Assembly (NCBI GenBank): GCA_900088475.1
Contig: FLMG01002622.1
Location: 1 to 64,000, forward strand
Reading direction: 5' to 3'
Origin: Hyphochytrium catenoides
Taxonomy: Eukaryota; Protista; Hyphochytriomycota
Length of the DNA: 64,000 nt
Part shown: positions 2,446 through 58,232 of the stretch, one piece after another
Layout: each line of letters begins with the position of its first letter
Position numbering within the stretch: the first letter of the stretch is position 1
Notes under the pieces: model-generated
The model's input: only the letters and a program-made list of their open reading frames with translations
Database searches by the model: none
Told to the model about the DNA's origin: nothing
Position numbers and translations under genes: made by a program

Positions 2446-2452
2446 CTGACCT

Positions 2453-2528: not shown

Positions 2529-2636
2529 ACCAAACGTACTCTTTAACCAAACTCCGGTTTATTTATATACCAGAGTTTTTCCCCTCTGCGTCGGCCGCTG
2601 TACACTTTCTGGACTCAGCGCTATCACAGTTCAACA
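2453..2636 (-). mobile_element. LTR-like unit (type C) containing a TATA box and a tRNA-derived region, copy 1
   Basis: Minus strand starts TGTTGAACTGTGATAG, has GGTATATAAA, then a tRNA-like stretch; homologous along its length to 3725-3914. Confidence 0.6.
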
Positions 2637-32062: not shown

Positions 32063-32356
32063 GCAGCAGCAGCAGTAGCAGTAGTAGTAGCAACAGCAGC
32101 AGCAGGAGGAGGAGCAGCCTTGCTATCTCGCAGCAGCAGCCTTGCTATCTCGCAGCAGCAGCAGCAGCAGGAGCAACCTTGCTATCTCGCAGCAGCAGCC
32201 TTGCTATCTCGCAGCAGCAGCAGCAGCAGGAGCAGCAGCAGCAGCAGCAGGAGCAGCAGGAGCAGCAGCAGCAGCAGCAGGAGCAGCAGCAGCAGCAGGA
32301 GCAGCAGGAGCAGCAGCAGGAGCAGCAGGAGCAGCAGCAGCAGCAGCAGCAGCAGG

Positions 32357-32387
<31 letters not shown>

Positions 32388-32395
32388 GCAGGAGC

Positions 32396-32450
<55 letters not shown>

Positions 32451-32472
32451 GGAGCAGCAGCAGCAGCAGCAG
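32063..32472 (+). repeat. Compound (GCA/CAG)n trinucleotide tract with four copies of a 22-nt unit
   Basis: ~260 nt of GCA with GGA/GTA interruptions (32211-32472), preceded by CCTTGCTATCTCGCAGCAGCAG at 32118, 32140, 32177 and 32199. Confidence 0.97.
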
Positions 32473-33085
32473 ACGAGGAAAAGGCTGATGAAGATGTTGA
32501 CAAGGAGAAGAGCGCAAGGATTGAGCTTTGACTCGAACTGAGGATCGAGATCAATGATAGGTCACCTGAAGGTGAGAGACAGAGTGACATTTAAACAGAC
32601 GAATCCCGTAGCACCACACCGAGAGATTTCAGAAGGAAGCCAATAGAGAAGGGAGAAACGTTTTCTTTTTTGGGGGGGAGGGGAGGATCAACAACCTTTG
32701 TTATTTTCGTTCATTTATTTGTTAGTACAGGATCTGGACAGGTTTTCGCTATACCCCCTTCGGTAGGCAGCAGGAAACCTAAAAAGATACCCCTACTCTG
32801 GAGTATACATACGATTTCATTATTATCGATATCTTCCACGGATAAAATCGGATAAACTCGGTGGTATCAAAATCGGGTCCTTGTTCCGTTATGGTTGTGG
32901 CTCACAAGGAGGGAGGAGGAGGGAAGTGGATCATCAGAAAGGTGGCCCGCCCCAAAGGCACTCTTGGACGTTCAAAAAGGCAGTCATTTTATTAGAAGGA
33001 AGGAGGAGGAAGAGATCACAAGCCTTTGGCCTGCCATTGAAGATGGAAGCACTGGACACGATGATTGGAAGGGGGAAGGAGAGAG

Positions 33086-33117
<32 letters not shown>

Positions 33118-33911
33118 AGAGAGAGAGAGAAGAGAGAGAGAGACAGACGGCAAGGTATAAGAGTTAGAAGTAGCGAGAGAGAATTGGTAAGGACTCATAG
33201 TAGTGAGAGGAAGGAGATAACTTCTAAGGCCTAGGAAGGTCTTCTTCCATCGCTTTGCGCATTTCTTAGGTGTCATGGTGCCTCTGTGTTGGCTGTCACG
33301 TAGTCTGTTTATATGCTACAAGGTGTAGCGGAGAGAGGGAGAGAGAGCAAAGGGAGAGAGAGAGAGAGAGAGAGAGACAAAAGATATTTACACTCTGTCT
33401 TACTTCTTGCGTAGAGCTTGAGCTAGAAGAATGTTTTGCCTACGAAGAGAAGATGAAGAGAGTTGAGACAGCGGATAGTTCTACGAGTACTTGAGAGGGA
33501 GACTGCCCCCACTCTCTTCTTCTCTTCATGACAGCAAGCATCCAAGGTTTATAAAGATAGTACTCGTAGATACAGCGCAGCTCAGTCATCGATCACTCCA
33601 CAAGCTGAAGTTGTCTCCGCGCCAGAAGAAGTCACTCTCTTCCCAATCAATAGTATCTCTCTTATTCACGGTGCCCTGCCAACTGTCGTCGTCGAGCATT
33701 GCCTGCTGTCTAGTCCTACATCAACCAGCCAGTGCTCCACTCATTGACAGCCGCCGCAGAAGCCAGCCAGCCTCATGCAAAATAGTCAGGGATTGCTCTC
33801 AAGTCGTGGACACTAGAGAAAGAGACATCGCACTCAGTCGTGGAGAGAGAGACAGCAGGAACCCTTGTAAGCAGTTCAATCCCTTTCCTCTTATGACTGA
33901 CTCTCGACAGT

Positions 33912-34727
33912 ATGATGTGGCTGGGGTTGTGCTTTCCCCTTCTCCTCTTGCCCTTCCTTATATTGGCTTCCGGCTTGATCCTGAAGTGGGCGGCGGACCA
34001 GCCTCTCAAAGCCAAGTTTGCGGCAGGATTTCTCTGTGGATTCCTCCTGGCCGCGAGTGTCTTCTCTCTCCTGGTCAATGCAGGTTGTCTCTCTTTCGAC
34101 TCTGGCGGCTTTAGGCTGGGTGTCCCATTGATCGCGATCGTCTTGGGCTACGCTGCTGCCACACTCATGGGTTATATGATCAAGCTCTATCCAGGGTCGC
34201 TCCTAGCTGACGCGATACTGGCCTCAGGACCATGGATCCTAGCAGGATATCTTGGCCTCATCGTCATTGCATTAGGGGTGTCACTTGCCACTGCTTCCTC
34301 TGCAGCCTTATCGGCCATGGCTACCTATGGACCGCTCCTGGTGTGGTTGCTATCTGTGTCTGCCTCGGGTCTGTACCTCAAGACGAGACCAAACCAGCAA
34401 CGAATTGACGTTGGCACACGCCACTTCGTCTTCTGCTGCTGCTGTTGGGGCGGGTTAGGCCTGCTAATCGTTGCGATGGCATTGCTAATCTTCGTGGCAA
34501 CACTCTTCTCAAACTCAGCAAGAGGTTCGTCTTCATCCGCCTGGAGCTGGACCATGTTTGTTGCTCCGCCTATGGTTGTCATCGTCCTCTTAGCTGTTGC
34601 TCTGTGCCGCTATGGATTTCTCTCCCAGCTGGAGAAGCTCAAGCACGAAACAGCGATCCCTGTGCTTTATGAAGAAGAGCCCGTTGCCGTGGAGGTGGTC
34701 TTGGTGGCCGAAGAAAGGCAAAGATAA
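33912..34727 (+). CDS. Intronless 7-TM membrane protein, paralogue 1 (most divergent)
   Basis: 271-aa ORF with seven hydrophobic segments; family motifs WAADQP, AGFLCGFLLAA, AILASGP, GTRHFVFCCCCWGGL, GFLSQ. Confidence 0.85.
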   Translation: MMWLGLCFPLLLLPFLILASGLILKWAADQPLKAKFAAGFLCGFLLAASVFSLLVNAGCLSFDSGGFRLGVPLIAIVLGYAAATLMGYMIKLYPGSLLADAILASGPWILAGYLGLIVIALGVSLATASSAALSAMATYGPLLVWLLSVSASGLYLKTRPNQQRIDVGTRHFVFCCCCWGGLGLLIVAMALLIFVATLFSNSARGSSSSAWSWTMFVAPPMVVIVLLAVALCRYGFLSQLEKLKHETAIPVLYEEEPVAVEVVLVAEERQR

Positions 34728-37475
34728 AAAACTGCGCTGCCTTTTGCTAGAACCTTCTTGTCCGCTGCATGGGACGTAGTGCTCGCCCTCCAGCCGAGAG
34801 GCAACCTTATTCTTCTTGACTAGTCCACCATCACTTTTCTTATAGTTAGTAGATCGTACGTCCAGAGTCAGCGGCGAAGACTCATTCCCTATGTAGCTAC
34901 TGTCTTCATGGCGAACGTTGCCATCTGTTCCCGATGCTGTCATTCCTTCCGTTCTGTTAAGATCAAGGGAGAAAGAGAGACGCTGGTGGTCATCATCAAC
35001 CTAAGACCTGCAGCCAATAGGTGGCGGTTGGACAAGATGTTCCGCTCTATAGCTCAGTAGGCCCTCGTCGTAGCGGTAAAGCAGCTCTTAGTGCATGATA
35101 AACCAGCGCTTGTGATCCCTGTTCACTGCTTGCCTTCAAAAATTTCTCTCTCTTTTGCCTCTTCTCCTCTCATTTCCCTCCTGTTCCCTTCTTATCGACT
35201 ATGTCGAGCTCTCTCCTCCTTTGTCCAATGCTACTTCTGGGGATACGAGGACCACTACAAAGCTGGTAGGTAATGTTTAGCGTGCTGTCCTTCAAGACGC
35301 TTCTCTTCCATTAAAGAGGAGCTTCACCTTTCTCCGGACAGGCATTCAACGTCTCAACGACAAGCAAGCGAATGTCTGTGGAGTCTCCAGCTCTTGATGA
35401 AGGCAGCTTTTCTTCTCCGAGCGTCATCCTACATGAGGACACGAACGAAGCAGCGTCAGCTCAGATGTTAGGGCCCTCACTTACTGAGATGCCAGCTGTT
35501 GAGTTGAAGTCTACGTGGCGCACACTACCGTCCTTGCTGATTAGCTATTTGTGTCGGTACCACGGTGACAGGAGATGGGCACGAGGAGGTCCGTATCATT
35601 GATCGTTGTGCAAGGATAGCGGCCTGGTTAGGTCGTAGTAGATACCACTTTGCGAAGAGAAAAGAGAAGCAGAAGACAGATTCTCCAAACATTGAGAAGC
35701 TGTATAGATCTCTGCTTATCAACATGGAAGTCTACAGGGCCACATATTCTGCTCTAAAGGTGTCTGCGAAGATGTGTTAATGACAGAAAGGAAGGAATGA
35801 GGAATCGGCGGCGCTATAGTCCGTCGCCCTCGGAACTCAAGGCCCTCGTGCTGGCTGCTACGGCCCTGGTTGATGAAGATAGTGCTTATATTATGCATCA
35901 GCTTCGTCTGACAGCCTCTTCTGACAGTGAACGAAGACATATCGCGATGCAAGGGCAGCATATACTTCTTCATTCCGGGTCCCGTATAGCTTCTCATCCA
36001 AGACCTCGGGACACTTCTGATGTGAGAGCATTCACCTCCTTGTGATGCCCTTTGCTTGCCTGATGAAGTCGGAGTGAATGGAGGCGGAGGACATGTAGGA
36101 GCTTGCTGCTCTCCACCATCCGTCTGTGTGCCTAGGTTTGCATACAGGTTCCCATTACCCAGCTGCGCTGAAACGCTTCCTTGCATTCTGCATGTTAGAA
36201 CCGCCGTCTCTATCGCGGTGTCCTTGTTGAAGGTTGCCCTTCAGAGGTACAAAGTGCAAGGACGCTTTTCAGTTTGTCCGAGGGCAGTCAGTCTCTATGA
36301 TTGCCGTCCATACCGTCGCCTCTGTCATTTTGTCAGCTGATTCGAAGGAAAAGCCTTGTCCTCCACATCAGACTCCTGAGGAGCTGGCCACGCAAGAAGA
36401 GCCTTTGCGATACTCTCGTTCCTCCTGTGATGATGTGATGATGATGATCTCCTTTGAGCCTTCCGCAATGGCAGGCTTTCTTCTTGTTCCTCTTCTTGTT
36501 TCCGCTTGAGGTAGGAAAAGAGGATGATGGCTGGCTGCGACGGTTTATCTCTAGAGCAGCTGCAAGCATCGATGTTCGTCAACCATGGCCTACCAAGGAC
36601 TGAACAACAAGAAGGCGGAAGCACAATGACCGGGATCAGAGACTGAGAGACGAAAGCAAAGCAGCGATGGATGGAACATTGGTCAGGTCTCAGTCCAAAA
36701 AACATTGGCCAGACCTCAGTTCCCACACACTCCCAACGTGTTGACCTGATGAAGGACGCCTCGGAATCAGGTTTCTTCTCCTCATCCTGCTTGAATTCCT
36801 ATCTTCCTCATTGCCAGCTGCTGCCTCTTCTACACCTGGGCGCCATCGACCGTGCTCCTCCGTCAACCATTTTGCCCAGGGCGTGGGACAGCTCAACACT
36901 ATGGCCACCAGAACCTGACCTTACTCCTAATAACTGGGGCTCCTCCGGTCTTGAAGACTACGTGGCTGGAGCTAAAGCGCCTCTCTTCTTTTGGACGCAA
37001 CAAGGATGGATAGGGAGGAAAGTTGGCTGTCCAACAATGCATTCGTTTACTAGCTGCAGCCACTCCCGCTTCTGCCTGTCCCCTTCTCTTTCTCCTTCCT
37101 TTCTTGCGTCTGACCGTCGTTGGGCGAGTGCTGTGCAATGTCCTCGCTGCGCTTGAGCAACCTACCTGCCTGTCTCTTTACTTATCAACTTCCCTCACAA
37201 GATCCATCTCCCATCCTCCTTTTATAAGAAGTACCTGACGCGCCGACAGTCTCGTGCAAAAGATCTCCTTTTCTTGCCTTTTTCTCAGCAGCATCGAAGA
37301 GCATCTCAAGCGTGTTACCATCAGCAGCAGACCAGTCAGCGCCTTCGTATTGGCAAAAGAGGAGACGAGGCATAGTCTCTGTACTTCTCCGGCTTAGACG
37401 AGCCTTTCGTCGTGTCCGGAAAAGTAGCAGCGGTTGGCTCAACAACCAGCAGACTATCAGGCAGTGCGGACCGTC

Positions 37476-38303
37476 ATGGACACCTTCTATGATAATGATT
37501 CCTTTACTCGCGAGGAGACGGTCGGGATAGCAATAGGTTTTTCGCTGATCCTAGTATTGCCCTTCCTAATCGTGGCTTCTGGAATGCTAGGGGATTGGTC
37601 TGTGGACAAGCCCAAGAGGGCCATGGGCGGCGCGGGCTTTTTCTGTGGCTTCCTGCTGGCAGTGGGAGCCTTCTCTTTGTTAGTAAGCACAGGATCTATC
37701 ACACTTTCCTCCTCCATTGGTACGGCTCTTGGCGAGCTTGTCGTGCTCTATCTTATAGGAGCTGTACTAGCGGCTATAGCAGCAAGTAGCCCAAAGAGCG
37801 GACTGACAGCGACGATACTCTGTGCAGGACCAATGTTTCTTGTCGGCAACGTTACGCTCCTCGTGCTCCTCGTTGTTAGCTTAGGTCTACATGAGGATGA
37901 TAGGGATTCCTTAGTAAGCGCAGGAGGAACGTATGGGTTGTTGGCGGTCTCGCTCTCAGCCTTAGGTTTCGGCTTTATGAGGTCCAGAGCATTCTCCAGC
38001 AGCGACCAGCAGCTGCTGCAGGGCACAAGTCACTTCGTCTCATGTGTGTGCTGTTGGGGTGCGCTGGCCCTGTTGATGGGCCTGGCGGCTATGATGCAGC
38101 TGATCATCGCGGCAGCCTCTCTTTCTTTGGCACTGACAGCCGTTCTCCTGGTCCTCACCATCCTAATCACTGCTACGGTTGGTCGCCATGCGTACGTCAT
38201 TCAGGCCCAAAGGCTTAACGCAATCCCCCAGTGGAGCGAGGCTGAAGAAGCTCCTATGCCAACGGATATCGTGTATGTAGAGACTCAAAGAAGCCGCGTT
38301 TAG
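37476..38303 (+). CDS. Intronless 7-TM membrane protein, paralogue 2
   Basis: ATG at 37476 (MDTFYDND); motifs WSVDKP, GAGFFCGFLLA, TILCAGP, LQGTSHFVSCVCCWGAL, LNAIPQW, TDIVYVETQ. Confidence 0.88.
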   Translation: MDTFYDNDSFTREETVGIAIGFSLILVLPFLIVASGMLGDWSVDKPKRAMGGAGFFCGFLLAVGAFSLLVSTGSITLSSSIGTALGELVVLYLIGAVLAAIAASSPKSGLTATILCAGPMFLVGNVTLLVLLVVSLGLHEDDRDSLVSAGGTYGLLAVSLSALGFGFMRSRAFSSSDQQLLQGTSHFVSCVCCWGALALLMGLAAMMQLIIAAASLSLALTAVLLVLTILITATVGRHAYVIQAQRLNAIPQWSEAEEAPMPTDIVYVETQRSRV

Positions 38304-40699
38304 CTGCTGGCGTACCGGCCAGCCCACGATAACAGAGGAGAAACTTCAAGACAGGGCACGGGAAGGTTGATGGACAAAGAGCAGCAGTGCATAAGCCATC
38401 TACCCCGACAATCTACGTTGGCCCCATTACTTCTTTCATAAAATCAGAGATTGGACACCTCGTTCACCTCTTCTTCGGCAGTATGGGAGAAGGATGTACG
38501 GAGCAGACGGGCATAGCGTGCTACTCTTCTCAACCAGAGTGTTCCTCTGTCATCAGTCACCAGTTCGGAGAAGAGTGCCTCTTAAAGTCTTCTTTATAAC
38601 TGTCTGCCGCCAGACCTTAGGCTCATTAGTTAGGTAAGGGAATAATAAGACGCATGCTATTGGCATTCAAAAGAGTAGACCTCTCCGACAGAGATAGACC
38701 TCTCACAACAGTTGTAAAGAGACAGCACTTATTAAGCCACAGCTTACTGCCGCAAGGAGAGTTATAGATGTGTGTCACTTCCCTGGTAGATCTCCTTCCA
38801 TCATCTCTACGGATCACTGCTGGGATCGGCGTCAATCAATGGCTCTCAGGGAGGAGGAGGCTTCTCCTTCTCTCTCCCATCTTCTCTCGTTCTCGACCCA
38901 GCTAGATCGCCATTGCTATTGAAACTTTCTTCTACTAATGCATTCAGTCGTCTTCTGATCCATTCAGTCGTTGACTACTTCTTAAAAAATCTCTTACTAA
39001 GATCCCTTACCACGAGTGTCTTCCTTCCTTGCTTGTCTGACCTGATGAGGCTTGGGCCCAGAGCTCATTAGCACACTTTTATAACTCTGTCTTCTTCTAT
39101 AACCCAGAAGAGCAGAAAGGTAAGAGGCTCCTCTGACTGGGGATGTCCCTTTCACTCCTGGCCTTGTTCGCTATTAGCCGAAGGGATATGTACCGCCCCT
39201 TGAAAGAAGATGCTAAGACCTAAGAAAGCCTTCACAAGCAAGGCGTCTCGTGATCGACCAAGAAGTGGTGCGGTGGACTTAACCGACTAAGGCGTAGCAG
39301 CACTGGCTTTGCCATTGCTGATGAGAAGAAGGCTGATACTAGCTTTCCCTTAATAGAGTGATGTCACGTCAATGATGACTGCCTCTCGTCAGTCACGAGT
39401 AAGCGAGTCAACAACAGACGGTGTCTCCCTCTCCTTTCTCTCACCTGTTCCCCTATTTCCTGCTTGTTCTCTCTCGTCATCACACAGACACAATCTAGGC
39501 CTCAGCTATGAAGAACGAGGGCAAGGTATGCTAGTCGTATCGCGCCTTATGGTGGCTTCACTTCTTTTTATTGGCTTATTAGCAGTGGTGGCTTACTCTG
39601 AGTAGCCGCATATCCTCAACAAAAAGGTCAGCAGCCATCCGCTGATCAGCAGACGTGTTTTCCTCCGCAGGGACAACAAGGAATCGGCAATTAAGCAGCC
39701 CATTTTGGGACCTGTACATGGATGAAAGGATGTTCAGCGACGAGAAGTTGGTGAGACGCCCTCTCTGGCAGGATATCAAGGATGAGAATAACGACGGAGA
39801 TGACAGCGACGAAGTGGTGGTGATCAGGCCTGACCAAAGAAAACCCACCTAGTAAGAAGTTGGGTTGATCGAGATCGTCTTCTGTGCTTCACCTTTGGTG
39901 GCCCAATCGCCTCCTCCCAGAAGCCTTTCACCTTTGGTGGCCCAATCGCCTCCTCCTCAGGACAGGCTTCTGGGAGGTCGAGCTGCCTGAAAGGCGATGA
40001 TAGCAATGGGCCAGTCACTTAACTAGGTAAGCCGATCAAGCGGGTGCGACGACTGAACTATCTCATCGACGAGCGAATGAGACCAAAGGGACCAATCCCT
40101 TGCTACGAATTCTTCGTAGAGAACTTCGTGCTTCAAAGCGTCATGTTATAGAGCGGCAAATTGTGTGCTGCCACCACCGGGTTCAGATGTTGAGTCTGGA
40201 TAATAAAGAACTGAAGTTGACTAGTATCAGCTGGTGCTGGGAACACGGGACCGTTGCCTGCCCATCTTGCACCGACTAAGTGGTCAGCCGTGATAAAAAT
40301 CTGACTTTGACACTGAACGCAGAGGTAGCTCTATCATTGTATGAAAGACGGCAGCGAACGGCACCATAGAAGAAGAAGGAGTGCATGCGATCAGGCAAAG
40401 ACGGAAGCCTGCTGCCATACAGTTGTCTTGAGCTGTGCTTGCAACACTAAGAGCATCATCACATCCCGCTGCTGCGCCGAAAACCTTCTTGCAGGACGAT
40501 CTCGTCCCCAACGCTGCCTTTTTGAGGTTAACCTCGGGGACCTACGATCGACTTCCTTGCTTAGGGTTGATGGAGATGACGTAGAGGAGAACAGAAAGAA
40601 AGCGCAGATGCTGGGCAAAGAGCCAAGAGATGGAGAGTGAGAGGGAAGAGCAGCGCATACTTGGCCTGTTGTGGTGCTTGCGCTTAGGTTGGGCCAGTA

Positions 40700-41020
40700 A
40701 AGGGTTGTGCCACTTTTTGCCCTACTACAGTTATGCCCACTCCTAACATAATGCTCTACGAGTAAGTTGGGTGGGAATCCAGCGTGCCTGACCCCTCCAG
40801 CTATGAAGAGTTGAAAGATCACACTACTGTATCCTGTGCTAATGTCCTTCACCATTTTCAACATAACTCCTTGACGGCTGGGAGTTAGAAGGTGCCCTTG
40901 AAATATGTTGCCTCTGAACTCTATGGCTAGCAGAACTCAAGACGGTTTGTCCATGGGGTGGCGTGGGAACAGACGCCACTTGTTCTTGCTTAGGTTGGGC
41001 AAAACAGTGGCACAACCCTT
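40700..41020. mobile_element. Putative MITE with ~24-bp terminal inverted repeats and TA flanks
   Basis: TA|AAGGGTTGTGCCACTTTTTGCCC ... GGGCAAAACAGTGGCACAACCCTT(T)|TA; non-coding; both halves recur at 60911-61273. Confidence 0.8.
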
Positions 41021-42118
41021 TTAGTTGTGCCACAAGATGGCCAATACACTGCAGACTCCGCTCTAAGAATTATAACGCCTTACCACAAGAAAGACAGGAC
41101 TTTTGTTTCCCCCTAAGAAACTAGGAATAACCCTCTCCCCCCCTCCAGCCCCGCCGAATAGAGGTAATAAGGCCTAGGAAACTAAAAAGAAATGATTTCA
41201 ATAATGGAGGTTTGGACTTTGGACAGCATAATTATTCGGGGTAGAAAAATCTATTGGATTGCTTTATCTATTGGATTGCTTTATTGGTTGTTATTTTTAT
41301 GAATAGATCTACCAATTACATCCCACCATTTATGTCCCGGAGTGTGCTACAGTATAATAAAAGTAAAACGGTTTATACCCTACAGTACCAGTTTATGCTT
41401 TGAGGCGTTTTGGTCGTAGGAATAAAAGCCCTTATTATTATTAGCAGATAAGACCTGTTCTTTATAAAATTGATAATAAAGGGCACATCAACTGCAAAAA
41501 GAAGGAATAACTGTTAGACTTCTCTCTATCAATTATAATGCCTTGGCCGACACGGTCACTATGGCTTGGTAGCGATGATGCCGACGGCGCTGTATCATCA
41601 GACGGCGCTGTATTATCAGGGGAAGGACACCGTGGACAGTGAGGTCACAGGATTTGGCCAGCGCCTAAGCTGGCTTGCTGACGAGCTGGTAAGCTAGTGA
41701 GTAGCAGGACTGAGAGTCGGACTGCTAGAGCAGCAGGGACGGCAGGAGTTGAGCTGGGTAACCAGCCCACTGGCAGCAGCTTGTCCGCCTGCTGTCTCCT
41801 CTTCTATCTTCTCTTTTCTTCTCCTGATGCCATGGCTTGGTCGATGGGTCGATCAATACACAGGAGGCCTGGCTTCTCTTTCGAGTGTCAGAGCTAGGAC
41901 CTTTCTGTCTCCTTATTTATCAACTTTCCTTACGAGAGCCAAAGCAATCATCCTTTGGCTGACCGCCGGCAGTCTAAGGGAACTCAAAAAGCACTCATAT
42001 TGGTGAAGAAGCAAAGAAGTCGGCTGTGCTGTGCGTCTCCGCACAAGGAGGAGGAAAGCCTTTCATACAGCAGAAGCAGTGGCCGTTTGCCGCGGAATCA
42101 AGAAGGCTCTGATCTATC

Positions 42119-42940
42119 ATGGATACCTATTATTATGACGATGAAGATTATTCTTCGTCTCTGAGAAGGACGGCCGTGATAGCAATAGTCATTATGCTGA
42201 TTCTGATCTCGCCCTTCCTGGCCGTGGCGGGTGGGATGCTAGGAAAGTGGTCAGTGGACAGGCCTCAGAGCGCCATGGGCGGCGCGGGATTTGTCTGTGG
42301 CTTCTTGCTGGCCGCTGGAGTCTTCTCTCTATTGCTAGGGACGGGAGCTATCGGATATTCCACTGGCACGGCTCTGGGCGTGCTTTTCATGCTCTACCTC
42401 ACTGGAGGTGTACTAGCGGCTATTGCCAAGAATAATCCAAGGAGCAGACTCACAGCGACAATACTCTGTGCCGGACCAATGTATATTATCGGCAACGTTG
42501 TACTTCTGCTGGTGCTACTCCTGCTTTGCTTTGTCGTAAATGAGGATTTTAGGGATGCCCTTCTGGTCGTAGTGGGAGTGACTGGCCCGTTGGTGGTCTT
42601 GCTCCTAACCTTAGGTTTCGGCTCTATAAAGTCCAGAGGATTCTCCGGCAGCGACCAGCAGCAGCTACAGGGCACACGTCACTTTGTCTTATGTGTGTGC
42701 TGTTGGGGTGGGCTGGCGCTAGTGATCGGCCTGGAGGCTATAGTACAGCTGATCGTCGCAGTTGCCTCTCCTGGCTTGGGGCTGTCAGTGGCCTTCTTCG
42801 TGTTCATCGTTCTCCTTTCCGCTTTGCTTGGCCGCCATACCTTTGTCACACAGACCCGAAGACTGAACTCCATTCCCCAGTGGACCGAGGCTGAAGTTGC
42901 TACGCCCACGGCTCTCGTGTATGTGGAGACTCAAAAGTAG
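42119..42940 (+). CDS. Intronless 7-TM membrane protein, paralogue 3
   Basis: 273-aa ORF (MDTYYYDDEDY...); motifs WSVDRP, GAGFVCGFLLA, TILCAGP, LQGTRHFVLCVCCWGGL, LNSIPQW, VYVETQK. Confidence 0.9.
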   Translation: MDTYYYDDEDYSSSLRRTAVIAIVIMLILISPFLAVAGGMLGKWSVDRPQSAMGGAGFVCGFLLAAGVFSLLLGTGAIGYSTGTALGVLFMLYLTGGVLAAIAKNNPRSRLTATILCAGPMYIIGNVVLLLVLLLLCFVVNEDFRDALLVVVGVTGPLVVLLLTLGFGSIKSRGFSGSDQQQLQGTRHFVLCVCCWGGLALVIGLEAIVQLIVAVASPGLGLSVAFFVFIVLLSALLGRHTFVTQTRRLNSIPQWTEAEVATPTALVYVETQK

Positions 42941-45018
42941 CCACTTTGAGCATAATAAGAGTGCAATAGGAAGCTGGTCCCGGATGATAGCAGAGAAGAA
43001 GCTTGACGAATGAAGGCAAGCTAGCCTTGTCTTACGAAGGGGGAGCCGCGCATAAAGGCGCTATGTTGCCCATTTACTGCTTTATAATATCCAATATAGA
43101 GAAGAGTTCTCGAGCCTCTTCCTTGCCGGTGTAGAAAGAGGAAGCGACGGTCGAAGAAGAAAAGACAATAGCGTGAGTGGCAGCCCAAGAAGATTGTCCG
43201 TTCACTATTGAGAGTAGCCTAAGCCTGGATGCCTTCTATTTCTCCAATGGAGGCGAAGAAGCATCCTTCCTAGCTTCATGAAAAACTAGTATGGGAGCGA
43301 GCGCTGAGGATGCCGTGTTCGTGTGCGACCTCTTATTGCCCTAGCTTTATGACGTTAAGCTGCTCTTCTCTTGTTTCTTACGGTCAGGACTTCATTATCT
43401 ACCTCGCTGCTATAGCAAACGTATGTCCAGGCTCTCAAGTATCGTCTGTCGACTTTTGACTACTCCAGTCTTTCATCAATCAACAAGCTGTCGGGGCACG
43501 ATCGAAGTCGACACGGCACCTCGGCGGCCCTCGTTGCTATGCAACATTCCCTAGTAGTACTTCAGTTAGTCCTCTTGTTCATAACGCATCTGCCACTGGT
43601 GACGTCGAGCTGTCATTAATACTGAAACGACTGTTCTTCGCAGCGGCTGAATTGGAGCAGCAGTAAGCTGTCTGTTGCAAGGAAGCGTTGCGCTACTACT
43701 GTTTGCCATCGGTCGAAGTCTAGAGCGTGTCTTCTCTGGACGAGAGCTAGGCTAATCAAAATGTAGAACGAAGGCTTATGAGAAGGAACTCGTGATCCTA
43801 CTTCTTGGTGACACTGCGTTCCGCCTGATAGCACATCCTGGCTGAGCAGCAGTCGGGGAACTAACATCCTGACTAACTAATGAAAGTAACGACACGTTAT
43901 GTGCAGCACCAGCGAAGGAGAGGACGTCTGCAAAGACTCACCTCAGAGGTACCCTAGACGCTTGTTTTTCACTTGCATCGAACCTATAAAGGGTAACATG
44001 ATGTCCAAAGGGAGGAAAGTATCAATGCAGAAGGAGCACGAAGATGGCTGTGAGCCAATGACAAGGCGCCGCTCAGATTTTGGTCAGGTCCTCAGTCCCA
44101 CATCCCACGCAATGGCCAGCTCTCCGTCCAAACTAAGGCCCAGTCTCAGTCCAATACAAGGCCAGTAATGAGCAGCACAAGACGCTTGCCAGGGGCGAAG
44201 CTCTAATAAAATGACAGACGGAGCACGAAGAGTTATACGTCCATCAGTTTCAAGCACAAGGCAAGGCCAAAATTTGATCGGTAAATTGTCAGGCCTTTGT
44301 GTCAAAGGAGCATTATCTATCGCATGTGTCCCCTTTCAGTCCCACCAGACAGGAAACCTTCAAGATACAGCTCCCAGACCACCGCAGACCATCGCTAGCA
44401 CCTTGCCTAGGAAGGGCAACCTCGTCGTCGTAGACTGACGGTGACTCGTTAACATTCTCTCTGTCTCTCGGTCCAAGCATCTTACTCGCCCGTCATGTTC
44501 ACCCGCAGCAGCAGGAGGTGGACAGGGCTACGAAGATTTGGTCTCAACCTCCTTCTTCCTTTTTTACGAAGGCTTATAAAGAGGCATTGCTCACCTGCTC
44601 ACAGAGTAGGGAGGCTAGGTAACCAAGTGCTATGCCAGGCCATAGCGGGGCTCTTCCATCCTTCATCCTCTCTTCTTCTTCTAGATAAACGATCAGTCCC
44701 TTGCTAGCTGCTCTTTCAGAGTCTGGAAGCTAGTTCCCGTCCGCCATTATTCATAAATAAACTTTCCTCGTCCTGTGAGAACCAACCCAGTATCTTCCTT
44801 CCCTACCCCGTGCGCGGTCTAGTGGAGCCCCTCTTCTGACTTCTCAGTGACAGCTGAGAATCTCCCAAGCATCGTATTGCACCCAGAGAGGAGCAGCGAA
44901 AGCATTATTGATTGTCGAACCCTACTGTCTCCTCTGCTTCTCCGTTCCAGAGAAGCTTTTCATCCAAGTAGTAAGCGTCGTCTGGCGAGCGCGATCAAGA
45001 AGTCTTTGCACCATCATC

Positions 45019-45828
45019 ATGGGTACATATGATGAAGATTATTCTTCTTCTGCGAGGGAGACGGCCGTGATAGCAATAGTGATAATGCTGATCCTGGTCT
45101 CGCCCTTCCTGGCCGTGGCTAGCGGGATGCTAGGAAATTGGTCTGTGGACAAGCCTCAGAGGGCCATGGGCGGTGCTGGCTTTGTCTGTGGCTTCTTGCT
45201 GGCCGGAGGAGTCTCCACTCTGTTGCTTAGCACAGGATGTATCACAGTTTCTACCGGTACGGCTCTGGCCATTCTTATCTTGGTATATCTCACTGGAGCT
45301 GTACTAGCAGCTATTGCCAAGAATAATCCAAGGAGCAGACTGACAGCAACGATACTCTGTGCAGGACCAACGTATCTTATTGGCAACGTTGTGCTCCTAG
45401 TGCTACTCCTTTGCTTCTTCCTAGTAGAAGATGATAGGGACGCCCTTCTAAATGCACTGGGAACATTTGGCGAGCTGGTGGTTCTGCTCTTAGCCTTAGC
45501 ATTCGGCTCTATGAGAGCCAAGGAGTTCTTCGACAGCGACCAGCAGCAGCAGCTACAAGGCACACGTCACTTCGTCTTATGTGTGTGCTGCTGGGGTGCC
45601 CTGTCACTGGTGATCGGCCTGACTGCTATCATTCAACTTATCCTCGCAGCATTCTCCTTTAACTTGGCGCTGTCTGCGCTCTTCCTGGTGCTCATCGTTC
45701 TGCTATCTGCCATGCTTGGCCGCCATACATTTATCACTCAAACCCGAAGACTGAAGTCCATTCCTCAGTGGAACGAACCTGAAGCTCCTGTGCCCACGGA
45801 TATCATATACGTCGAGACCCAAAAGTAG
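45019..45828 (+). CDS. Intronless 7-TM membrane protein, paralogue 4 (closest to paralogue 3)
   Basis: ATG at 45019 (MGTYDEDYSSS); shares long identical stretches with paralogue 3, e.g. AIAKNNPRSRLTATILCAGP. Confidence 0.9.
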   Translation: MGTYDEDYSSSARETAVIAIVIMLILVSPFLAVASGMLGNWSVDKPQRAMGGAGFVCGFLLAGGVSTLLLSTGCITVSTGTALAILILVYLTGAVLAAIAKNNPRSRLTATILCAGPTYLIGNVVLLVLLLCFFLVEDDRDALLNALGTFGELVVLLLALAFGSMRAKEFFDSDQQQQLQGTRHFVLCVCCWGALSLVIGLTAIIQLILAAFSFNLALSALFLVLIVLLSAMLGRHTFITQTRRLKSIPQWNEPEAPVPTDIIYVETQK

Positions 45829-46379
45829 CCAAGAAGGGTAGCAAATCTGTGGCATTAGGAGCAGTGGTGCTGCCGTTTGAGCGGCAGCAGTGGATCTGCC
45901 TGCTCCTCCGGCCAATCTGCGTAGAAGAGGATTGACGCTTGCCTGTTGATACATTTCTCTAAACAAGTTCCATATAGAAGACCATCGCTTTTCACTTTGT
46001 TATCGCCTCATAACAGTTCTCGTCGCTAGTGAAGTGACAGCGTCCGTCCCTAAGCAATTTTGTCGGGACGCCTCACCTCTGGACACGAAGAAGCATTCTT
46101 CCTGAACAAAAGCTTTGCGCCCTACCAGACCCTATAATCTCCCAGCGTGCTGGCACAGCGCTGTATCCGTCGTGTCGATGATGGTCCAGCAGAGCTTGAT
46201 AGTTCTTGGCGCTGAGAGAAATGATAGCTCTTACGCGCCTCCAGTCATGACTCATCTATAAGAGACTGATAATAGGCCTTCGTCTGACAGTCCCAGGGAG
46301 AGGTCTAGTAGTGGCAAGATGCAGATTGGCTCTGCTAACCCCACCATAAGGTAAGAAGACCAAGGACGGGTCTGGAAGG

Positions 46380-46805
46380 AGACTGAGAAAGTGTTTGTCT
46401 GATCTTGGCTGGCCAGGTCTCAGCTCAGACAAGCACCACGCAGAGGAAGACTTCAAGGGAGAACGCGCGTAAGTAAGAACGCTTTCTAGTTCAGAAAGAA
46501 GGTCTTTGATCGAATGATAGAGGGTAAGAAGAGAGTCTCCCTTGAGAGAAGAGTCAGTCTACCTGATAGTTCAAAGATAGAAGTCGTGACATGCAAGAGA
46601 AAGTGAATCAAGAGGCTATCCTAGGAACATGCAAAGAAGAAGAGAGCAGAAAGGGAACAGAAAGAGAAGAGCATTCTTCGTCAGAAGCCATCCATGGCCT
46701 ACTCTGATCAGGAGTACTCTCAAAGAGGAGAGGTCACATCGCATAATAAACCCGCCGATCCTTATCCAGCGGGCAATCAGATGGCTGGCAGTTGTTAGAG
46801 GAAGT
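46380..46805 (+). repeat. Dispersed diverged duplicate of ~62215-62605
   Basis: Collinear blocks such as CTTGGCTGGCCAGG.CTCAG.TCAGAC, GCAGAGGAAGACTTC, TAGAGGGTAAG..G.GAGTCTCCCTTG.GAGAAG and GAGTACTCTCAA...AGAGGAGAGG.CACATC occur in both loci. Confidence 0.8.
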
Positions 46806-48907
46806 ACACATTCAGCGCCCACTCCTGAGCATGATACCACCATCGGTCTGGCACTCTTCTGATGTTCACGAAGCATCGGGGTACCTTCCCTTCCTCATGA
46901 GAATAGGCAAGGCGGAAGAGACAACTGAGCAGGCAGGTGCTAGGCGCTTTTCCACTCGTGAGCATGTGAGATATGATGGCGAGACAGTGGCAAGTAGCGC
47001 AAATGACAACTATTCTGAGCTCGCCTTCTGATCTAAGCTTCACTCTTTCTGTCCACACCTTCCGAGCCGGCCGCTCGGTTGAGCTGATTTTCTCTCCCTT
47101 TTTCTTCCCGACAACTCTTCTTTCACACTCTATTCTTCCGCTCCTTTCCTTCTTTTATACCTAGTCCATGCACCCTACCCTCTCTTGCTCCACTAACGGT
47201 TTGATGGGAGGTACAGGGTTGAAGGTACAAGGGCTGCACGCATCGTTGCAGATCTTGACAGGTAGCAGCAGGGAAGAGGAGAAGAGGACGGAGCGGTCCA
47301 TCTCCGCTCTGTCCCGTTCGATACCACATGTTCCATGGGTCTCTCCTCCCGACTGTGCCTTCACCTTTCCATGTCTCCCCTTCCTGAGGATAGACAGATA
47401 CTGGTGACAGTCAGACCTTCTTGTTGTCTCCCTCTATTGGGCTATGCGGCTATCTGGTGTTCGGCAAATTCTGTAAGTTGTTCAAAGGCACTAAGCAACA
47501 ACGTTTTCAAAGCCGTCAACTTATATGTTGCCATGACGCATCGTCTCGTCTTGAAGTGGGACGACATAGAGTGACCAAGCAAGAGAGACCGTCCGAATGG
47601 AGAGAGGAGAGGAAGTAGAATTAGAAGAGAGAGAGAGTGAGACAGGTCTCGGGATTAGCCAAGACTGCGCCACGGATCAAATCTGCAGACTGATTTCTGA
47701 AGCCACGATAAGCTCCAGATACCGGCCGACAGATACCGATAACGAATCCGCAACGAGAACTAATCTGAGCTGGCAGCGCAACAGTCAGAAGAGCCTCAGT
47801 GCAGCTTCAAGGCAGTAAGTCTAATCGAGCGGCCTTCTAACAGGAAATAGCGTGTTTAGAGTTATCGAGATAGAGCCAAATCCTGACTGACTGTCACTGC
47901 TTTCTTGTTCCTACTTCCTACTGCTCCTATCATCTATCCTAGCTTCTCTTTTCTCTCTCTCTGTGCTCTCTCTGATCTCCTCGTCTCTTGCTGCTCTTGC
48001 CTACATCCCTACATCTTCGTGTACCCTATTCTACTGCTTAACACACATGATCCCCCTACTGTTCTCCACACCCGAAGATCTCTCCCTTCTGACCATCACT
48101 CCTTGAGTCCCTTACTGACTTCTCCTGCTCCTTCCTTACCTTCTGACAGCTCCAGTCCCTGGCCTGTTCTGATCTTCTGATGATGCACTGTGAAGCTCCA
48201 GCCATCTCCAATTAGCATGAGAGAGTCCCAGAATCTTTCTCATCTAAACCGCAAATCGGCCAGTCAAGAAGCCTCACAATGTCCCGCAGCTGCTTCAGCT
48301 CAGACGTCCTGTTACAGAGAGTAGAAAGCGACAGAGAGCGGAAAAAAGAGAGAGAGCGACGGCAAAGCGAGAGCGAGAGAAACAGAAAGCGGCAGAAGAC
48401 GGAGGAGAGAGAGAGAGAGCCGGGGAGAGAGAAAGAGGACTCAGTTGGAGTGGCCGAACCAAGGGGGAGGAAGAGAGATAGCACACACGGTAGAAAGAGA
48501 CACAGAAAGAGACATAGGGAGAGAAAGAAGAGGAGAGAGGAGGGATGAAGTGGGCTGTGATTAGAGATGAGATGAAGAGAGACAAGCCGATGATGGTTAA
48601 ACAGACAAACTAGTTTTTGCCTAGTTCCTAATTGGAGTTTGCCTAGTGCTCAAACAACATCGGTTTGAATCGCACAGCCACCATATCTCTCCTGTTTAGC
48701 CTTCAAATGAAGCGCCAACAAAGACAAGTGATGAGTGAGATCGGAAGAAGCCAAGGTCAGCCAAATGCGGAGCGAACTTAGAGAGAGAATGGCGCAACGC
48801 TTCTTCACGGACAACAAGGAACTCAATTCGAGAACTATAGGTCCCATCAAGGTGATAGAAACTTGGCTGGCGTGCTCGAGCCCCCGAAAATCGGCGGTGT
48901 CAGAACT

Positions 48908-48958
48908 GATGAGCTTCACGAAAGGATGAGCTTCACGGAAGGATGAGCTTCACGGAAG
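48908..48958 (+). repeat. 17-bp tandem repeat x3
   Basis: GATGAGCTTCACG(A/G)AAG repeated three times. Confidence 0.9.
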
Positions 48959-50803
48959 GATCAGCTATACCGTCAGACAGTAAGATAGTAGCACCATCAC
49001 AAGCAGCTTTATTTGGCAAGCTTGGGGGCGCGACGGGGGTTGGACAGAAGAGCCAGATGAGAGTCCGCGGAAGCAAGAGACGTCCTGTTGCATGGTCCCT
49101 GGAAGCTGACATGCCGATCAAACGCTTTCTGTTACTATTCTTTACTATTCTCAATACAGAGGTCATATGTCCGCCGCCATGAGAAAGGGCGGTCCCGGAT
49201 CTGTCTGGACACTGGACAGACTGACGTCTTGACATGTCCAGTAGTTCTCCACCAGAGGAACGTGTCCAACATACAGACACAACGGCTAATAATAAAACAG
49301 TAGTGCGTCTCTAAAACAGTAGTGGGTCTTTGTGCCTTAGATTACCGCTACTCGTTCTCAGAAAGAGAGAGAAAAAAAGAGGGGAAAAGAAGAAGAAAAA
49401 TAATAACCTAGGAACTCACCTCCTGTGTGGGTATAATGATAACGGTGCACTTAGCTATTCTTTATTCTGTTTTTTATAGAACTGCGAGAAGAAGAAGAAG
49501 AAGGGAGAAGAGGAATATAACTGAAGACGAGACGAGAGCTACGGAGTCCTGGAGACATCTTCAACACACTCTCCTCCGCCTACCTTCAAGAATGAACACC
49601 TGAAAATGAAGAAGAATCATGATTACTTCTTAAAGCGGGGGAAGAAGTAGAAAAAGGAAGAGAATAAGAAGGTGAAGGGTAAGGCAGCGGAAGAAGAAGA
49701 GACAAGAAACCTTGAACAATAGAAAGTTATTAGATCAGAATAAAAGGTCAATATAACTAAAGCTACGCTATGTATACGGAGCACTCCGTCTTCATTTACA
49801 ATAGAGAAATTCGGTGCACTTTTGCGAGTGTAGGAAGTTCTCCCAAGAATCAATGCTGGGTCATCTTGCTTCCCGTCGTAGTTCTATGTCAAGCTTGTTC
49901 CTGTGAAGGTTCTGAAGTCGGACAGTACTTAGTACTATGGTGACAGAAGGAGAGAGCCTTACTACTCGTACCTTACTACTATGATGGCCACGGTATCTTT
50001 GCTGAAGTTCAAGACGACGATATTCGGCGAGGCGTTCCTTCAGTTGATGATGAACAATAATCACTGTGGACGGCTACAGCTAGTTCTATTCTTTTTGCAA
50101 AAGAGAGAGGAGAAAGAGAAGAACCACAAGGCCTCTTCTCTGTCTTCTCTTCAGTAGAAAATAATGTCAGTGAAAAACTAGATGGGGATTATTGTCCATC
50201 TCTTGACTGATGATTGAGGGAGCTATCTGCATAACAAACAAGGGCTAAAAGCAAGGAGAAACGCGTGCCCATAGATAATGTGCCTAGCAGGACCAGATCG
50301 GACCGTTGTTTCCTGGAGACATTATCTATTCGTAGTTGTACGCCGACTTTTTTGCCTCTTCTTTCCCGTATAGTGTAGAGTTCTATCCCAGTCACTTCTG
50401 GAGGCGAACCTATGCACATTCCATGAAGAAAGCGACGGGAAGCCTGGTCATGACTAGCAGTTCTACTACTGTTACACTTGTACAATCTCGTTGCGTCCGA
50501 GTACGGGATGCTTGTCCTTGATTAACAGGTGGCGACACTTCGGTCAACCCCAACCTGGTCCCGACCACTTCACTCATCAACTTTCCTCACCTGCTGCTAC
50601 CCCAATTCTTCCGTCGACGACGGCCGATAGCAAACATCTTCTTTGAGTGGGTGGAGCAGCAGCTTCACAACATCACAAGCTTCTTACCATCTCCAGCACT
50701 GGGTTGGCGCCTGTTGTCTGTGGTTGTGCGCTTACGCCTCCTAGTCGTCAAGAAAAGCTTGTAGCCGTTCGCCGCACAGCGAGAAATTAGAGTGCGCACC
50801 ATT

Positions 50804-51618
50804 ATGGTTGAGGACGATTCTGCTCCTAATGCCGCCCGTGTGGTGATAGTACTACTGTTTGTCGCGCCGCTTCTACTCTCACCTTTGCTTGTCATGGGTT
50901 TCATGATGCTAGGAAACTGGTCCGTGAACAAACCTCGGAAGGCCATAGCGGGCGCGGGCTTTATCTTTGGCATCCTCCTGGTCATCGACGTGTCCTTTCT
51001 GTTAGCAGCAAGTCTAGAAATGGCTGCAGTCTTATTTGGGCCATGACGGGTATTGCAATGTATATTACTGGGGCAGTGCTCGCGGCTATTGCGTATAAGT
51101 ACCCTATAAGCAGACTGGTTACAATGATTCTCTGCGCAGGACCAGCCACTGCTATTGGCATCGTTGTACTACTCTTGGTGGTATATCTTAGCCTTCTTTT
51201 CCCATCAGGCAAGAACTATGATAAAGACGCTTTTCAACGTGCACTAGGTACATATTGTCCGTTGGGGCTTCTGCTCTTAAGTATGGTTTTCGGCTTTATG
51301 ATGTCAAGAAACTTTTCCGGCGGGAATCAGCAGCAGCTACAGGGAACACGGGAGTTCGTCCTCTATATTTGCTGCTGGGGTATGCTGTCATTGGCGATCG
51401 GCTTGTCTCCTGTACTAACATTCTTCACACTATGGTTGATGGCAGCGAGCATCCTAGCGTCAGCCTTCGTCCTGGTACTCATCCTTCTTACCGTTGCCAT
51501 GGTGGGCCGCAAGATTTTCATCACCTTGACTGGAAGACTTAATGACATCCCCCAGTTCAACGAGGTTGTGGACGAGCCTGTGGCCAAGGATACCGTGTAC
51601 GTGCAGACCCAACACTAG
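50804..51618 (+). pseudogene. 7-TM paralogue 5, split by a frameshift near 51030-51046
   Basis: 50804-51046 encodes TM1-2 (WSVNKP, AGAGFIFG); 51043-51618 in another frame encodes TM3-7 (MILCAGP, LQGTREFVLYICCWGML, LNDIPQF, VYVQTQH). The frames overlap at ATGA. Confidence 0.8.
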
Positions 51619-52483: not shown

Positions 52484-52537
<54 letters not shown>

Positions 52538-52762
52538 GAGAGAGAGAGAAAGAGACTTGATGGATTCTTCACAGGTCATTGAGCCACCGAAACGTCAACT
52601 GTAACCAACCAGAGTCATATAAAGCGAATATTCCCTTCTGTTGAAAGATTTCGCTCTATTTACTATGCTATGTAATGTAACTTTCAAGAAGACATTGAGA
52701 ATGAAAATAAAAGTGATGGAGTCTGTTTCACCTGGTGAATAGCTCGCCCCCCACCTTCTCTC

Positions 52763-52816
<54 letters not shown>

Positions 52817-52838
52817 NNNNNNNNNNNNNNNNNNNNNN
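52817..52838. other. Assembly gap inside a (CT)n microsatellite
   Basis: Run of N flanked by CT repeats. Confidence 0.99.
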
Positions 52839-52874
<36 letters not shown>

Positions 52875-53842
52875 CTTCTCTTTGCTCTCCCTTCTCACAA
52901 TATTCCTCTTTCTCTCTCTCTCTGTATTTCCCTCCCTGTTACCCGTCTCTCTCTCTTTTCCTGCAATACCTATCGTTTATAAGACACCTTCGTCCGCCAT
53001 GGTAACCCTCCTCCTCTCTCAGAAGTCTTGCTGCGGCTCATCAGTCCAACCATCAAGACAGCTCGAGCAGGGAAGGATGGCCGTTGGGAGGTTGGCTGCT
53101 CCGACTGACCGCCTCGCCGCCCACGAGGATGTGGAGGGTGCTGCATGCCTTCCAGGCAGCCAAGCGGAGAGGTCTAGAGGTCTTCTTCTTCTTCTTCTTA
53201 CCGTTGAGCACCCTCCCACCGGCGGCTCTCGATGGCGCCCAGGGGCCGCAGAGGGAGAGTAGAAGAAGAGAGCAGAACAGGAAGAAAGATTGGATTGGGA
53301 GAAGGAGAGGAGAGAGAGAGAAGGTTCCCTCTCGAAATCTCTTTCTAAAGCATACGCAGTCTTCTGCATTCTCCCTCTAGGAGACATACCTTCTTGGCGC
53401 TGCGTCGTCTGCCAGGAGTTAGGCTTAGCTTTCGATGGAAGAAGCCAACCAGTTAGGGTCCATTTCCTCTTCTTTCTCTTAGGATAGAAGGCTGGCTCAA
53501 GCTAGTCCCAGAGGTCTCTCTCCCTACTGTCTCTTGTCACTACCTCTCCCTATCCTTCAATCTGCAGAGATGATGAGGGAACTGAACTAGAAGTAGATTT
53601 AAAGCGGAAGAGGAAAAGGAGAGAGAGAGAGAGAGAGAGAGAGAACAGAGAGAGAGAGAGAAAGAGAAGAGTGGGGCATTCTGCTCGGGAAGCGAGGGAG
53701 AGAACCACCGGTAGACTTCTGCCTGACAGAAAGTCAGCTATAAGCGATGTCTGGGCCAACTCGCCAGCAACAAGCAGCAGCTGCTCTTCCTCCTTCTTGT
53801 CCTAAGTCTTCCCAGCTTTCTTCTTCTCCCCACTGGCGGTGG

Positions 53843-56800: not shown

Positions 56801-58232
56801 CGCCGCAGGGGAAGGCCACTTCATGATCCCATACAAAGCAGCCGTCGGAGGCTACTTAAGAGCTGATGGGCAAGGCTTCTGCGGCCAAACGATGGTGCAG
56901 CATGACCCTGAAGGCAGAGTTATCTTCCTTCATAGAAATGCGGCGAAGCTGAAGAGAGAGGACGGCCGACAGCTCATCTGGCAGTACGTGCAAGAGTATA
57001 ATGGCCCGGGTCGGGGTCGCGTTGACTTTAAGGATGACTGCTATTACTACGAGGACTCCACTGACCTTGTCCCTTTCTCTAAGATTGGAGCGTCTATCTC
57101 TGATCTGGAAGAGTATCTCCTGACCGAGGTAGCTGCTGACACGCAGAGAGCTGTGGAGATGAAGCAGCGGCAGTGGGCCCAGCATGCGCTGCCCCGCGAG
57201 GAGGAGAGACGGGTGCAGTATGAGAGTCATCGCCGTCTCTTAGAGAGAGGAAGCGCGCTTATGAGAGAGAAAGTGGCTGTCTTCGGCCTTTATCTCCCTT
57301 CTCGATCGACTCATAGCCTTCGCAGCGTCAAGCCTTTTGTCCAGACAGCAGCCAACGTGTTCAAGGACTTCTATGTCGTTCTTTCAATGGAAGCTGGCAT
57401 AGCTAAAGCCACTGTGGAGCTCGCCGCCTCGTGGAAGAGTGACGATCCTCAACACGTCTTCTACTTCCAGAACATGACTGGAGAAGAACAGCAAGTTCCT
57501 CCGTTGCACAGTGGAGAGGAGAGAAAGAAGAAGGGAGAACACTTAGGCGGAGGAAACAGAGCCAATAATAGGGCAAGAGAAGAGGAAGAAAGGGAAGAGA
57601 GCTTCCTCCGCTCGCTTCACTCTCTGTCGGCCGACTTTGCGATTCTGATAGATCCACGTGCCTTGCCTTATGGCTGGACAACGGACGGACTCTTCTCTTC
57701 TTTCGGATACTTGGCGCGAGCGCGGGAGGAGGAAGAGACAGAAGAAAACCTTGGGAGAAGAGGAGAAAAAGAGCCGGGTCAACACGAGGAAAAGGAGGAG
57801 GAGGACAGGAAGGACTGGGCTGTCCTCTGTTCTCATCCGACGCGATGGGACGGGCTTAGGGATCAATCTCTTGCTTACAAAGTGCTAAAGAGACCCATCC
57901 ACGACCTACTGGAGCAACCTTACGAAGTAGACTCCTGCTTGGCCAACGGAGTTCGGATCTATGATCTTTCAAGAGTTGGGGAGTGTCTCTTGTCTACTTC
58001 CTCCTCTATTGAGGGACAGCAAGAGCGGGATAATAGGAGAGAGGAAGATATATTTCCCGTTTTCTCTTCATCTTCTTCTCCTCCCCATCTCTGTTCTTCC
58101 TCCGTCGATGAACCAGTGGCTGCTGTTCCACCAGTGGACGAACAAGAGAGCTTCCACTCGTGTTTGAGGAGTAAGCACTTGAGAATAGGGGTGAACCCTG
58201 CGCAGGTAGCCCGCCAGGCGAGAGACGGTTGA
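53843..58232 (+). CDS. Large secreted/Golgi glycosyltransferase: Cys-repeat N-terminus + GT71 (MNN2-like alpha-mannosyltransferase) domain + degenerate second GT-A-like domain
   Basis: GT71 motifs RRGIVI, LPIEIW, IKVYALL, LVLDDDNIPIRDP, VFWPDFW, ESGQLLVDK, WGDKEMFRFAW, MVQHDPEG, FLHRN. The frame is open 54225-58232; a signal-peptide ORF starting at 53843 joins it through a frame change at ~54224. Confidence 0.85.

Follow-up and report, generated by a model that had tools for sequence, protein, structure and literature searches.

The window analysed here comprises 64,000 nucleotides of DNA from the oomycete-related protist Hyphochytrium catenoides (assembly GCA_900088475.1, contig FLMG01002622.1, positions 1 to 64,000 of the forward strand) and carries an array of genes for small membrane proteins. 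The array consists of four intact genes (c1 to c4) and one broken gene (c5), which are adjacent, lie on the same strand and have no introns. A preliminary description, made from the sequence of the window, had reported five intronless open reading frames (ORFs) on one strand at this locus. This holds for c1 to c4, which run uninterrupted from the starts given there, but c5 is frameshifted and does not form one frame, so that the fifth copy needs correction. Because all copies descend from one ancestor, their lack of introns counts as one event and not as five. Within the array c1 has diverged furthest, with 36–38% identity to c3. It has no acidic N-terminus, shows FCCCCWGG where the sixth transmembrane (TM) helix ends on the inner side, and is matched by a hidden Markov model (HMM) of the family at E 1e-94.

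The distance from ATG to stop in c5 is 815 nucleotides, a length not divisible by three. The frame of the ATG (frame 1) ends after about 80 codons at a stop codon at 51044–46. The C-terminal piece lies in another frame, which is open from 50830 to 51615 with its first ATG at 51043, and spans TM3 through TM7 to the C-terminus with approximately 50% identity to c3. When the DNA is aligned with c2 to c4, indels totalling -10 nucleotides fall in the outer loop between TM2 and TM3. An intron at this position is ruled out, because only 38 nucleotides (51014–51051) separate the two pieces matched by the family HMM, which is too short. Both pieces, compared with their siblings, give ratios of nonsynonymous to synonymous substitution rates (dN/dS, or omega) of 0.34–0.74, and the break is therefore recent. 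We think that c5 is probably a pseudogene of recent origin or a null allele, and regard an error in the assembly as the less likely explanation.

The family is not restricted to the array. A tblastn search of the genome (61.0 Mb in 4759 contigs) with a single family protein and a second search with the family HMM gave eight loci, which are the five array copies and three others (C2090, C3518 and C637). Seven of the ORFs are intact, with lengths of 242–276 codons. No decayed relics were found in the array spacers when the six frames of the window were scanned with the family HMM. These spacers are 2–5 kb long and have nothing in common besides (GA)n microsatellites. DNA similarity between copies reaches from about 22 nucleotides upstream of the ATG to about 3 nucleotides past the stop codon (c3/c4, in a self-comparison of 32–53 kb). 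Pairwise dN/dS, calculated by the method of Nei and Gojobori, ranges from 0.34 to 0.53 among c2 to c4, at dS of 0.48–0.62; c4 and c3 are the closest pair (dN/dS 0.34, dS 0.48), and c2 gives 0.38–0.53 against c3 and c4. Towards c1 and the unlinked loci dS is saturated. Since DNA similarity stops at the edges of the coding sequence and dN/dS is below 1, the sequences indicate that these are real genes maintained by selection rather than chance ORFs. The existence of an intronless relative in another organism, roughly 27–31% identical over the matched stretches (L010, below), is further evidence of this.

Two of the loci outside the array, C2090 and C3518, align along their whole 3.8 kb. Their coding sequences (dN 0.035, dS 0.065) are better preserved than their outer flanks, which are 80–82% identical. 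This flank divergence exceeds the heterozygosity of about 2.75% reported for the genome. The pair is more probably a segmental duplication of recent date than a case of simple haplotigs; the alternative is a pair of strongly diverged haplotypes. In a maximum-likelihood tree c2, c3 and c4 cluster with c5, and c1 stands apart. The tree also pairs C637 with the outside relative described below, but there two long branches meet and the grouping is unsafe. The family has expanded by tandem and segmental duplication, and the birth-and-death history that had been proposed for it is supported by the frameshifted c5, by divergences that range from dS 0.48 to saturation, and by the one recent segmental duplicate.

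Outside H. catenoides we found a single relative. An exhaustive HMM search of 1.84 billion cluster representatives gave one match (P0001, E 3e-17), a singleton from the Logan assembly of run ERR505057. A word-index protein search yielded no match with c3 alone, and yielded P0001 only when an eight-row alignment was used. The deposited gene call for P0001 (288 residues) begins 28 codons late and thereby loses TM1; the full ORF on the Logan contig (L010) includes it. The L010 protein is 23–31% identical to the H. catenoides family over the matched stretches. Beyond this gene the contig has no DNA in common with the H. catenoides genome, and L010 therefore comes from a different organism. In IMG/VR contigs and in JGI metagenome contigs there were pattern matches only and no confirmed relative, a sequence profile search of the PDB returned nothing at E<=10, and Pfam searches with all members at E<=10 gave only noise (e.g., DUF6057, DUF7269 and EMP70, at E>0.02). 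A feature search of the ESM Atlas with two members gave nothing usable, and the contig index holds no record of the exact family protein. As judged from these sequence searches, the family is known from the H. catenoides genome and one other public contig only. They support the earlier view of a lineage-restricted family of paralogous seven-helix proteins, for which we detected no kinship with any known family or solved fold.

The family members are small integral membrane proteins of 240–320 residues with seven helices. An AlphaFold2 model of c3 (m498c04863f7b; pLDDT 79, pTM 0.77) consists of seven long helices, and a model of the L010 protein (pLDDT 75, pTM 0.71) likewise has seven TM helices. 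Both models and hydropathy agree on the seven hydrophobic segments first noticed in the array. Approximately 62% of the residues are membrane-buried, the outer loops have only 5–18 residues, and small-residue motifs are present in TM2 (GGAGFxCG) and TM4 (AGPxxxxG). In all eight proteins the loops after TM1, TM3 and TM5, together with the C-terminal tail, contain 7–13 lysines and arginines, compared to 0–3 in the remaining loops plus the N-terminus. Given this bias in every member, the positive-inside rule places the N-terminus very probably outside and the C-terminus inside, the orientation already suggested in the preliminary description. The proteins have so few N-glycosylation sequons that these are of no help for the topology.

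Conservation is strongly polarised across the membrane. With helix boundaries taken from c3 and the near-duplicate C3518 left out, mean pairwise identity is 0.45 in the cytoplasmic helix halves and 0.35 in the inner loops, compared to 0.26 in the outer helix halves and 0.22 in the outer loops (inner versus outer helix halves, permutation p<5e-5). The cytoplasmic half also holds 13 of the 16 invariant positions other than methionine, and nearly every deeply conserved residue falls there or in the inner loops. The outer half and outer loops evolve about twice as fast as the inner side. Among c2 to c4, the cytoplasmic half gives an omega of 0.31 versus 0.53 for the outer half (p=0.03). The conserved cytoplasmic side and variable outer side seen at first reading are thus confirmed in a stronger form. 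The faster evolution of the outer half, with its omega of 0.53 and no class above 1, amounts to relaxed constraint, and diversifying selection is not demonstrated.

The sequence motifs quoted in the preliminary description are present, although KNNPRSRL, IPQW and VYVETQ are confined to the young clade of c2 to c5. Positions that are invariant in both organisms include P32, W44, P49, A52, A56, G61, L64, G119-P120, G125, F189, C194-C195-W196 and E259 (c3 numbering). Four of these residues, F189, C194, C195 and W196, do not vary in any of the eight proteins from the two organisms and define the deep signature F-x4-CCW. S-acylation classically takes place at clusters of cysteines on the inner boundary of the membrane, and by analogy we infer that the CCW cluster is a candidate site of this modification. 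An extra CC pair just after TM5 is carried by C2090 and C3518.

Structure searches with the two models retrieved no close fold. Foldseek against the PDB gave best E values of 0.53 and 0.17, with no G-protein-coupled receptor (GPCR) in the top rows, and against BFVD the best E value was 0.33, with none at E<=0.001. Comparison with 48,161 chains by VIA-align gave best Z scores of 7.8 and 7.0, mostly from matches to two-helix hairpins; helical bundles have a stated background near Z 13. An Atlas structure search gave TM-scores of at most 0.39 normalised by query, including a GPR157-like cluster at 0.39. Human TMEM45A (PDB 7oqz), a DUF716 protein, was the only chain whose alignment covered almost the entire bundle with either model (Z 6.7 over 147 residues at 3.9 Å for model 1; Z 5.4 over 148 residues at 4.3 Å for model 2). 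The DUF716 model PF04819 matches nothing in the genome nor on the family proteins, however. The fold may be a new one, as far as models built from shallow alignments can suggest. The preliminary description had named a confident full-length match to a well-characterised family as one result that would count against its proposal, and the Pfam, PDB and fold searches gave none.

Other seven-helix candidates were rejected. On reading of the sequences, no member has a lysine inside TM7, as a microbial rhodopsin would, and no rhodopsin appears among the rows of the fold searches; the L010 protein has one lysine at the outer edge of TM7. For a 3+1+3 arrangement of the PQ-loop or SWEET type, aligning the N-terminal part of the family alignment to its C-terminal part with hhalign gave a probability of at most 0.2%, and no repeat of TM1–3 in TM5–7 was found.

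The array lies among ordinary host genes, which encode a TM9SF/EMP70 protein, an ABCG-type transporter and a Mannosyl_trans3 protein (Table 1), and the G+C content of the array genes matches that of the surrounding sequence. The contrast that had been drawn between intronless copies and intron-rich neighbours is real, as the TM9SF gene illustrates. The genome averages 3.64 introns for each gene, and it carries giant-virus insertions (PMC5795050). Just downstream of the array, the Mannosyl_trans3 ORF is itself a large and apparently intronless glycosyltransferase gene. The array has (GA)n/(TC)n microsatellites on either side (33079–33377 and 52484–52923), and a (GCA)87 tract is present at 32211–32472. 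These repeats are the sole self-similarity in the array region apart from the coding sequences.

We also noted a short purine-rich motif resembling TCAAGA..AGCTT at 15–60 nucleotides upstream of the ATG in c3, c4, c5, C2090 and C3518, so that the five members include the very divergent C2090/C3518 pair. The sequences are (G)ATCAAGAAG in c3 and c4, TCAAGAAAAGCTT in c5 and ATCAAGAGAAGCTT in C2090 and C3518. A common element of the start site or leader is one possible meaning of the motif; its counts across the window are not above chance.

Table 1. Locations of the genes and features discussed. Positions are those of the window unless a contig, a locus or protein residues are named.
Feature	Position	Strand	Remarks
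TM9SF/EMP70 gene	~11.9–16.5 kb	-	Split into at least 7 exon pieces
c1	33912–34727	+	From ORF listing; 271 residues
c2	37476–38303	+	From ORF listing; 275 residues; 59–60% identity to c3
c3	42119–42940	+	From ORF listing; 273 residues; reference copy
Family signature in c3 (R-H-F-V-L-C-V-C-C-W-G-G-L)	42674–42712	+	Residues 186–198, cytoplasmic end of TM6
Helices in the c3 model	Residues 9–47, 49–75, 82–105, 110–139, 142–173, 187–216, 220–251		
c4	45019–45828	+	From ORF listing; 269 residues; 75% identity to c3
c5	50804–51618	+	Start as first described; broken by a net -1 frameshift
Mannosyl_trans3 (PF11051) ORF	54378–58232	+	1284 residues, uninterrupted; domain at residues 587–843, E 2e-35
Upstream motif, c3	42097–42118		
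Upstream motif, c4	44994–45018		
Upstream motif, c5	50747–50760		
Upstream motif, L006	~1490–1515		
Upstream motif, L007	Just upstream of 2322	-	
C2090 locus (L006)	8341–9165	+	Unlinked family member
C3518 locus (L007)	2385–3209	-	Unlinked family member
L010 (Logan contig ERR505057_3362)	4814–5764		Outside relative; full ORF of 316 residues, intronless, includes TM1

What might such a family do? The pattern of conservation fits the logic of a receptor or adaptor better than that of a transporter, because the invariant positions of transporters usually lie in mid-membrane. We propose that the conserved face on the inside, to which the invariant F-x4-CCW of TM6 belongs, would be a working surface common to all members, that the CCW cluster would probably be S-acylated and so provide a lipid anchor, and that this face would contact a shared partner in the cytosol or the inner leaflet. 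The paralogues would then differ in what their outer halves bind or sense. We give this reading a probability of approximately 0.45, and receptor function is best described as a hypothesis compatible with the data.

Several points weigh against it. The step from membrane protein to receptor or adaptor draws on the conservation pattern and on nothing else, and conservation of the inner half would be just as well explained by a gate, by a site like that of an enzyme or by one that faces lipid. With outer loops this short there is little surface for ligand recognition, and no site class among c2 to c4 has omega >1. The positive-inside rule is the sole ground for the topology, and the alignments behind the AlphaFold2 models are shallow (7 sequences for c3, 8 for the L010 protein). 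Moreover, neither a motif nor a family match points to GPCRs, since Pfam models of the 7tm clan gave none at E<=10. As to the fold, the GPCR rows in the structural comparison of model 1 are partial, with Z scores below the helical-bundle background, and are absent from the VIA top 50 for model 2.

The most competitive alternative, which we consider possible but somewhat doubtful, is that the proteins sense nothing and are small-solute transporters, channel subunits or membrane-organising scaffolds, with the copies providing dosage or stage-specific isoforms. Deep burial in the membrane and the very short outer loops are what this would lead one to expect, and the small-residue motifs in TM2 and TM4 suggest tight helix packing. 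Palmitoylated tetraspanins, claudins and MARVEL proteins offer a comparison for the scaffold, since membrane-adjacent cytosolic cysteines are typical of S-acylated scaffolds and the family has such cysteines on its cytosolic side. The weak rows of the fold searches, in addition, are mostly transporters and channels. None of the matches to a transporter family or fold reaches significance, however, and the internal repeat that is common in small transporters is missing. The position of the invariants also speaks for the receptor or adaptor reading, as they are found at the cytoplasmic end and not in mid-membrane where substrate sites usually lie.

A bolder form of the receptor reading would make the family a new class of seven-helix surface receptors, present only in hyphochytrid-like stramenopiles and with no relation to GPCRs, rhodopsins, PAQRs or insect ORs in sequence or helix packing. 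Its members would signal through a conserved and probably S-acylated F-x4-CCW cytoplasmic face, and the paralogues would recognise different small ligands in their variable outer halves. Taken with all these particulars, we think it rather unlikely.

It is more improbable still that these are true members of the GPCR clan which have become unrecognisable. The number of helices, the N-out/C-in orientation, the conserved inner half and the variable outer half would all be expected of GPCRs. G-alpha genes are present in the genome, which would permit G-protein coupling without showing it. The structural comparison of model 1 with VIA contains GPCRs, namely CB2 (Z 7.2, 127 residues aligned, root-mean-square deviation (rmsd) 5.9 Å), LPA6 (Z 7.2, 113 residues, 6.8 Å) and BRS3 (Z 6.2, 155 residues, 7.1 Å), and the GPR157-like Atlas cluster is a further weak row of this kind. 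These alignments are the partial, sub-background ones mentioned above, however, and neither DRY nor NPxxY is seen in the printed alignments, in agreement with the preliminary description.

The kinship with DUF4203 proteins (TM7SF3/TMEM198) that had been suggested does not hold, and a very divergent branch of that family is very improbable. A motif resemblance (AGFxxGF, and a Gln after TM7), the similar size and the seven TM helices had spoken for it. However, PF13886 gave no match at E<=10 on the proteins scanned, and in a genome-wide scan seven other loci exceeded the gathering score (29.2 bits) but none of the eight family loci was found, even at E<=1. Aligned by hhalign with five DUF4203 paralogues of the same genome, the eight-sequence family alignment gave a probability of 0.25% over 14 columns. 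The family is not demonstrable as a GPCR, a rhodopsin or a DUF4203 protein. Of the original interpretation the DUF4203 link falls, and the birth-and-death family of seven-helix proteins with a conserved inside remains. As a separate observation, the genome contains at least seven DUF4203 (TM7S3/TMEM198) genes (C773, C3822, C3735, C4384, C939, C4289 and C2941), with the domain mostly in a single open frame, a sizeable expansion of a little-studied family.

That the genes are non-functional, either decaying ORFs or recent imports from giant viruses or bacteria, is hardly plausible: their lack of introns in an intron-rich genome that is known to carry giant-virus insertions, the near absence of homologues and the broken c5 would fit, but dN/dS is below 1, conservation is confined to the coding sequence, G+C matches the surroundings, the array sits amid the intron-rich host genes (TM9SF, ABCG, mannosyltransferase), and no viral or bacterial homologue was seen in IMG/VR, in BFVD or among proteins predicted from public genomes and metagenomes.

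Protist genomes commonly contain orphan families of membrane proteins, and on its sequence this one would be promising rather than surprising. H. catenoides is the source of the potassium channelrhodopsins, unexpected seven-helix proteins of practical value. The array may offer a concrete handle on how a 'pseudofungus' senses its environment or organises its membrane, and the models make it a candidate for a new membrane fold. GPCR-type receptors were not treated in the H. catenoides genome paper (PMC5795050).

Among known systems, class A GPCRs share with the family the seven TM helices, the orientation predicted here (N-out/C-in), conservation of the cytoplasmic half and, in TM6, a motif of Cys and Trp. 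However, the family CCW is predicted at the cytoplasmic end of TM6, whereas the CWxP of GPCRs is in mid-helix, and the missing DRY and NPxxY, the lack of a Pfam match and the partial structural alignments at high rmsd set the two further apart. TM7S3_TM198/DUF4203 proteins are similar in size, in their seven predicted TM helices and in having helices rich in Gly and Ala, but there is no HMM or profile–profile similarity and the true DUF4203 genes of this genome are a separate set. TMEM45A shares the general shape at most, with Z scores under the helical-bundle background and 9–14% identity.

Nematode sr genes and insect OR/GR genes form lineage-specific tandem arrays of seven-TM, chemoreceptor-like proteins. 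Compared to these, the H. catenoides family is small (only eight loci), has tiny outer loops and no detected positive selection, and shows no sequence or fold link to them. Points in common are the seven TM helices, tandem birth and death with a broken copy, a restricted taxonomic range, and paralogues in which one face is conserved and the opposite face varies.

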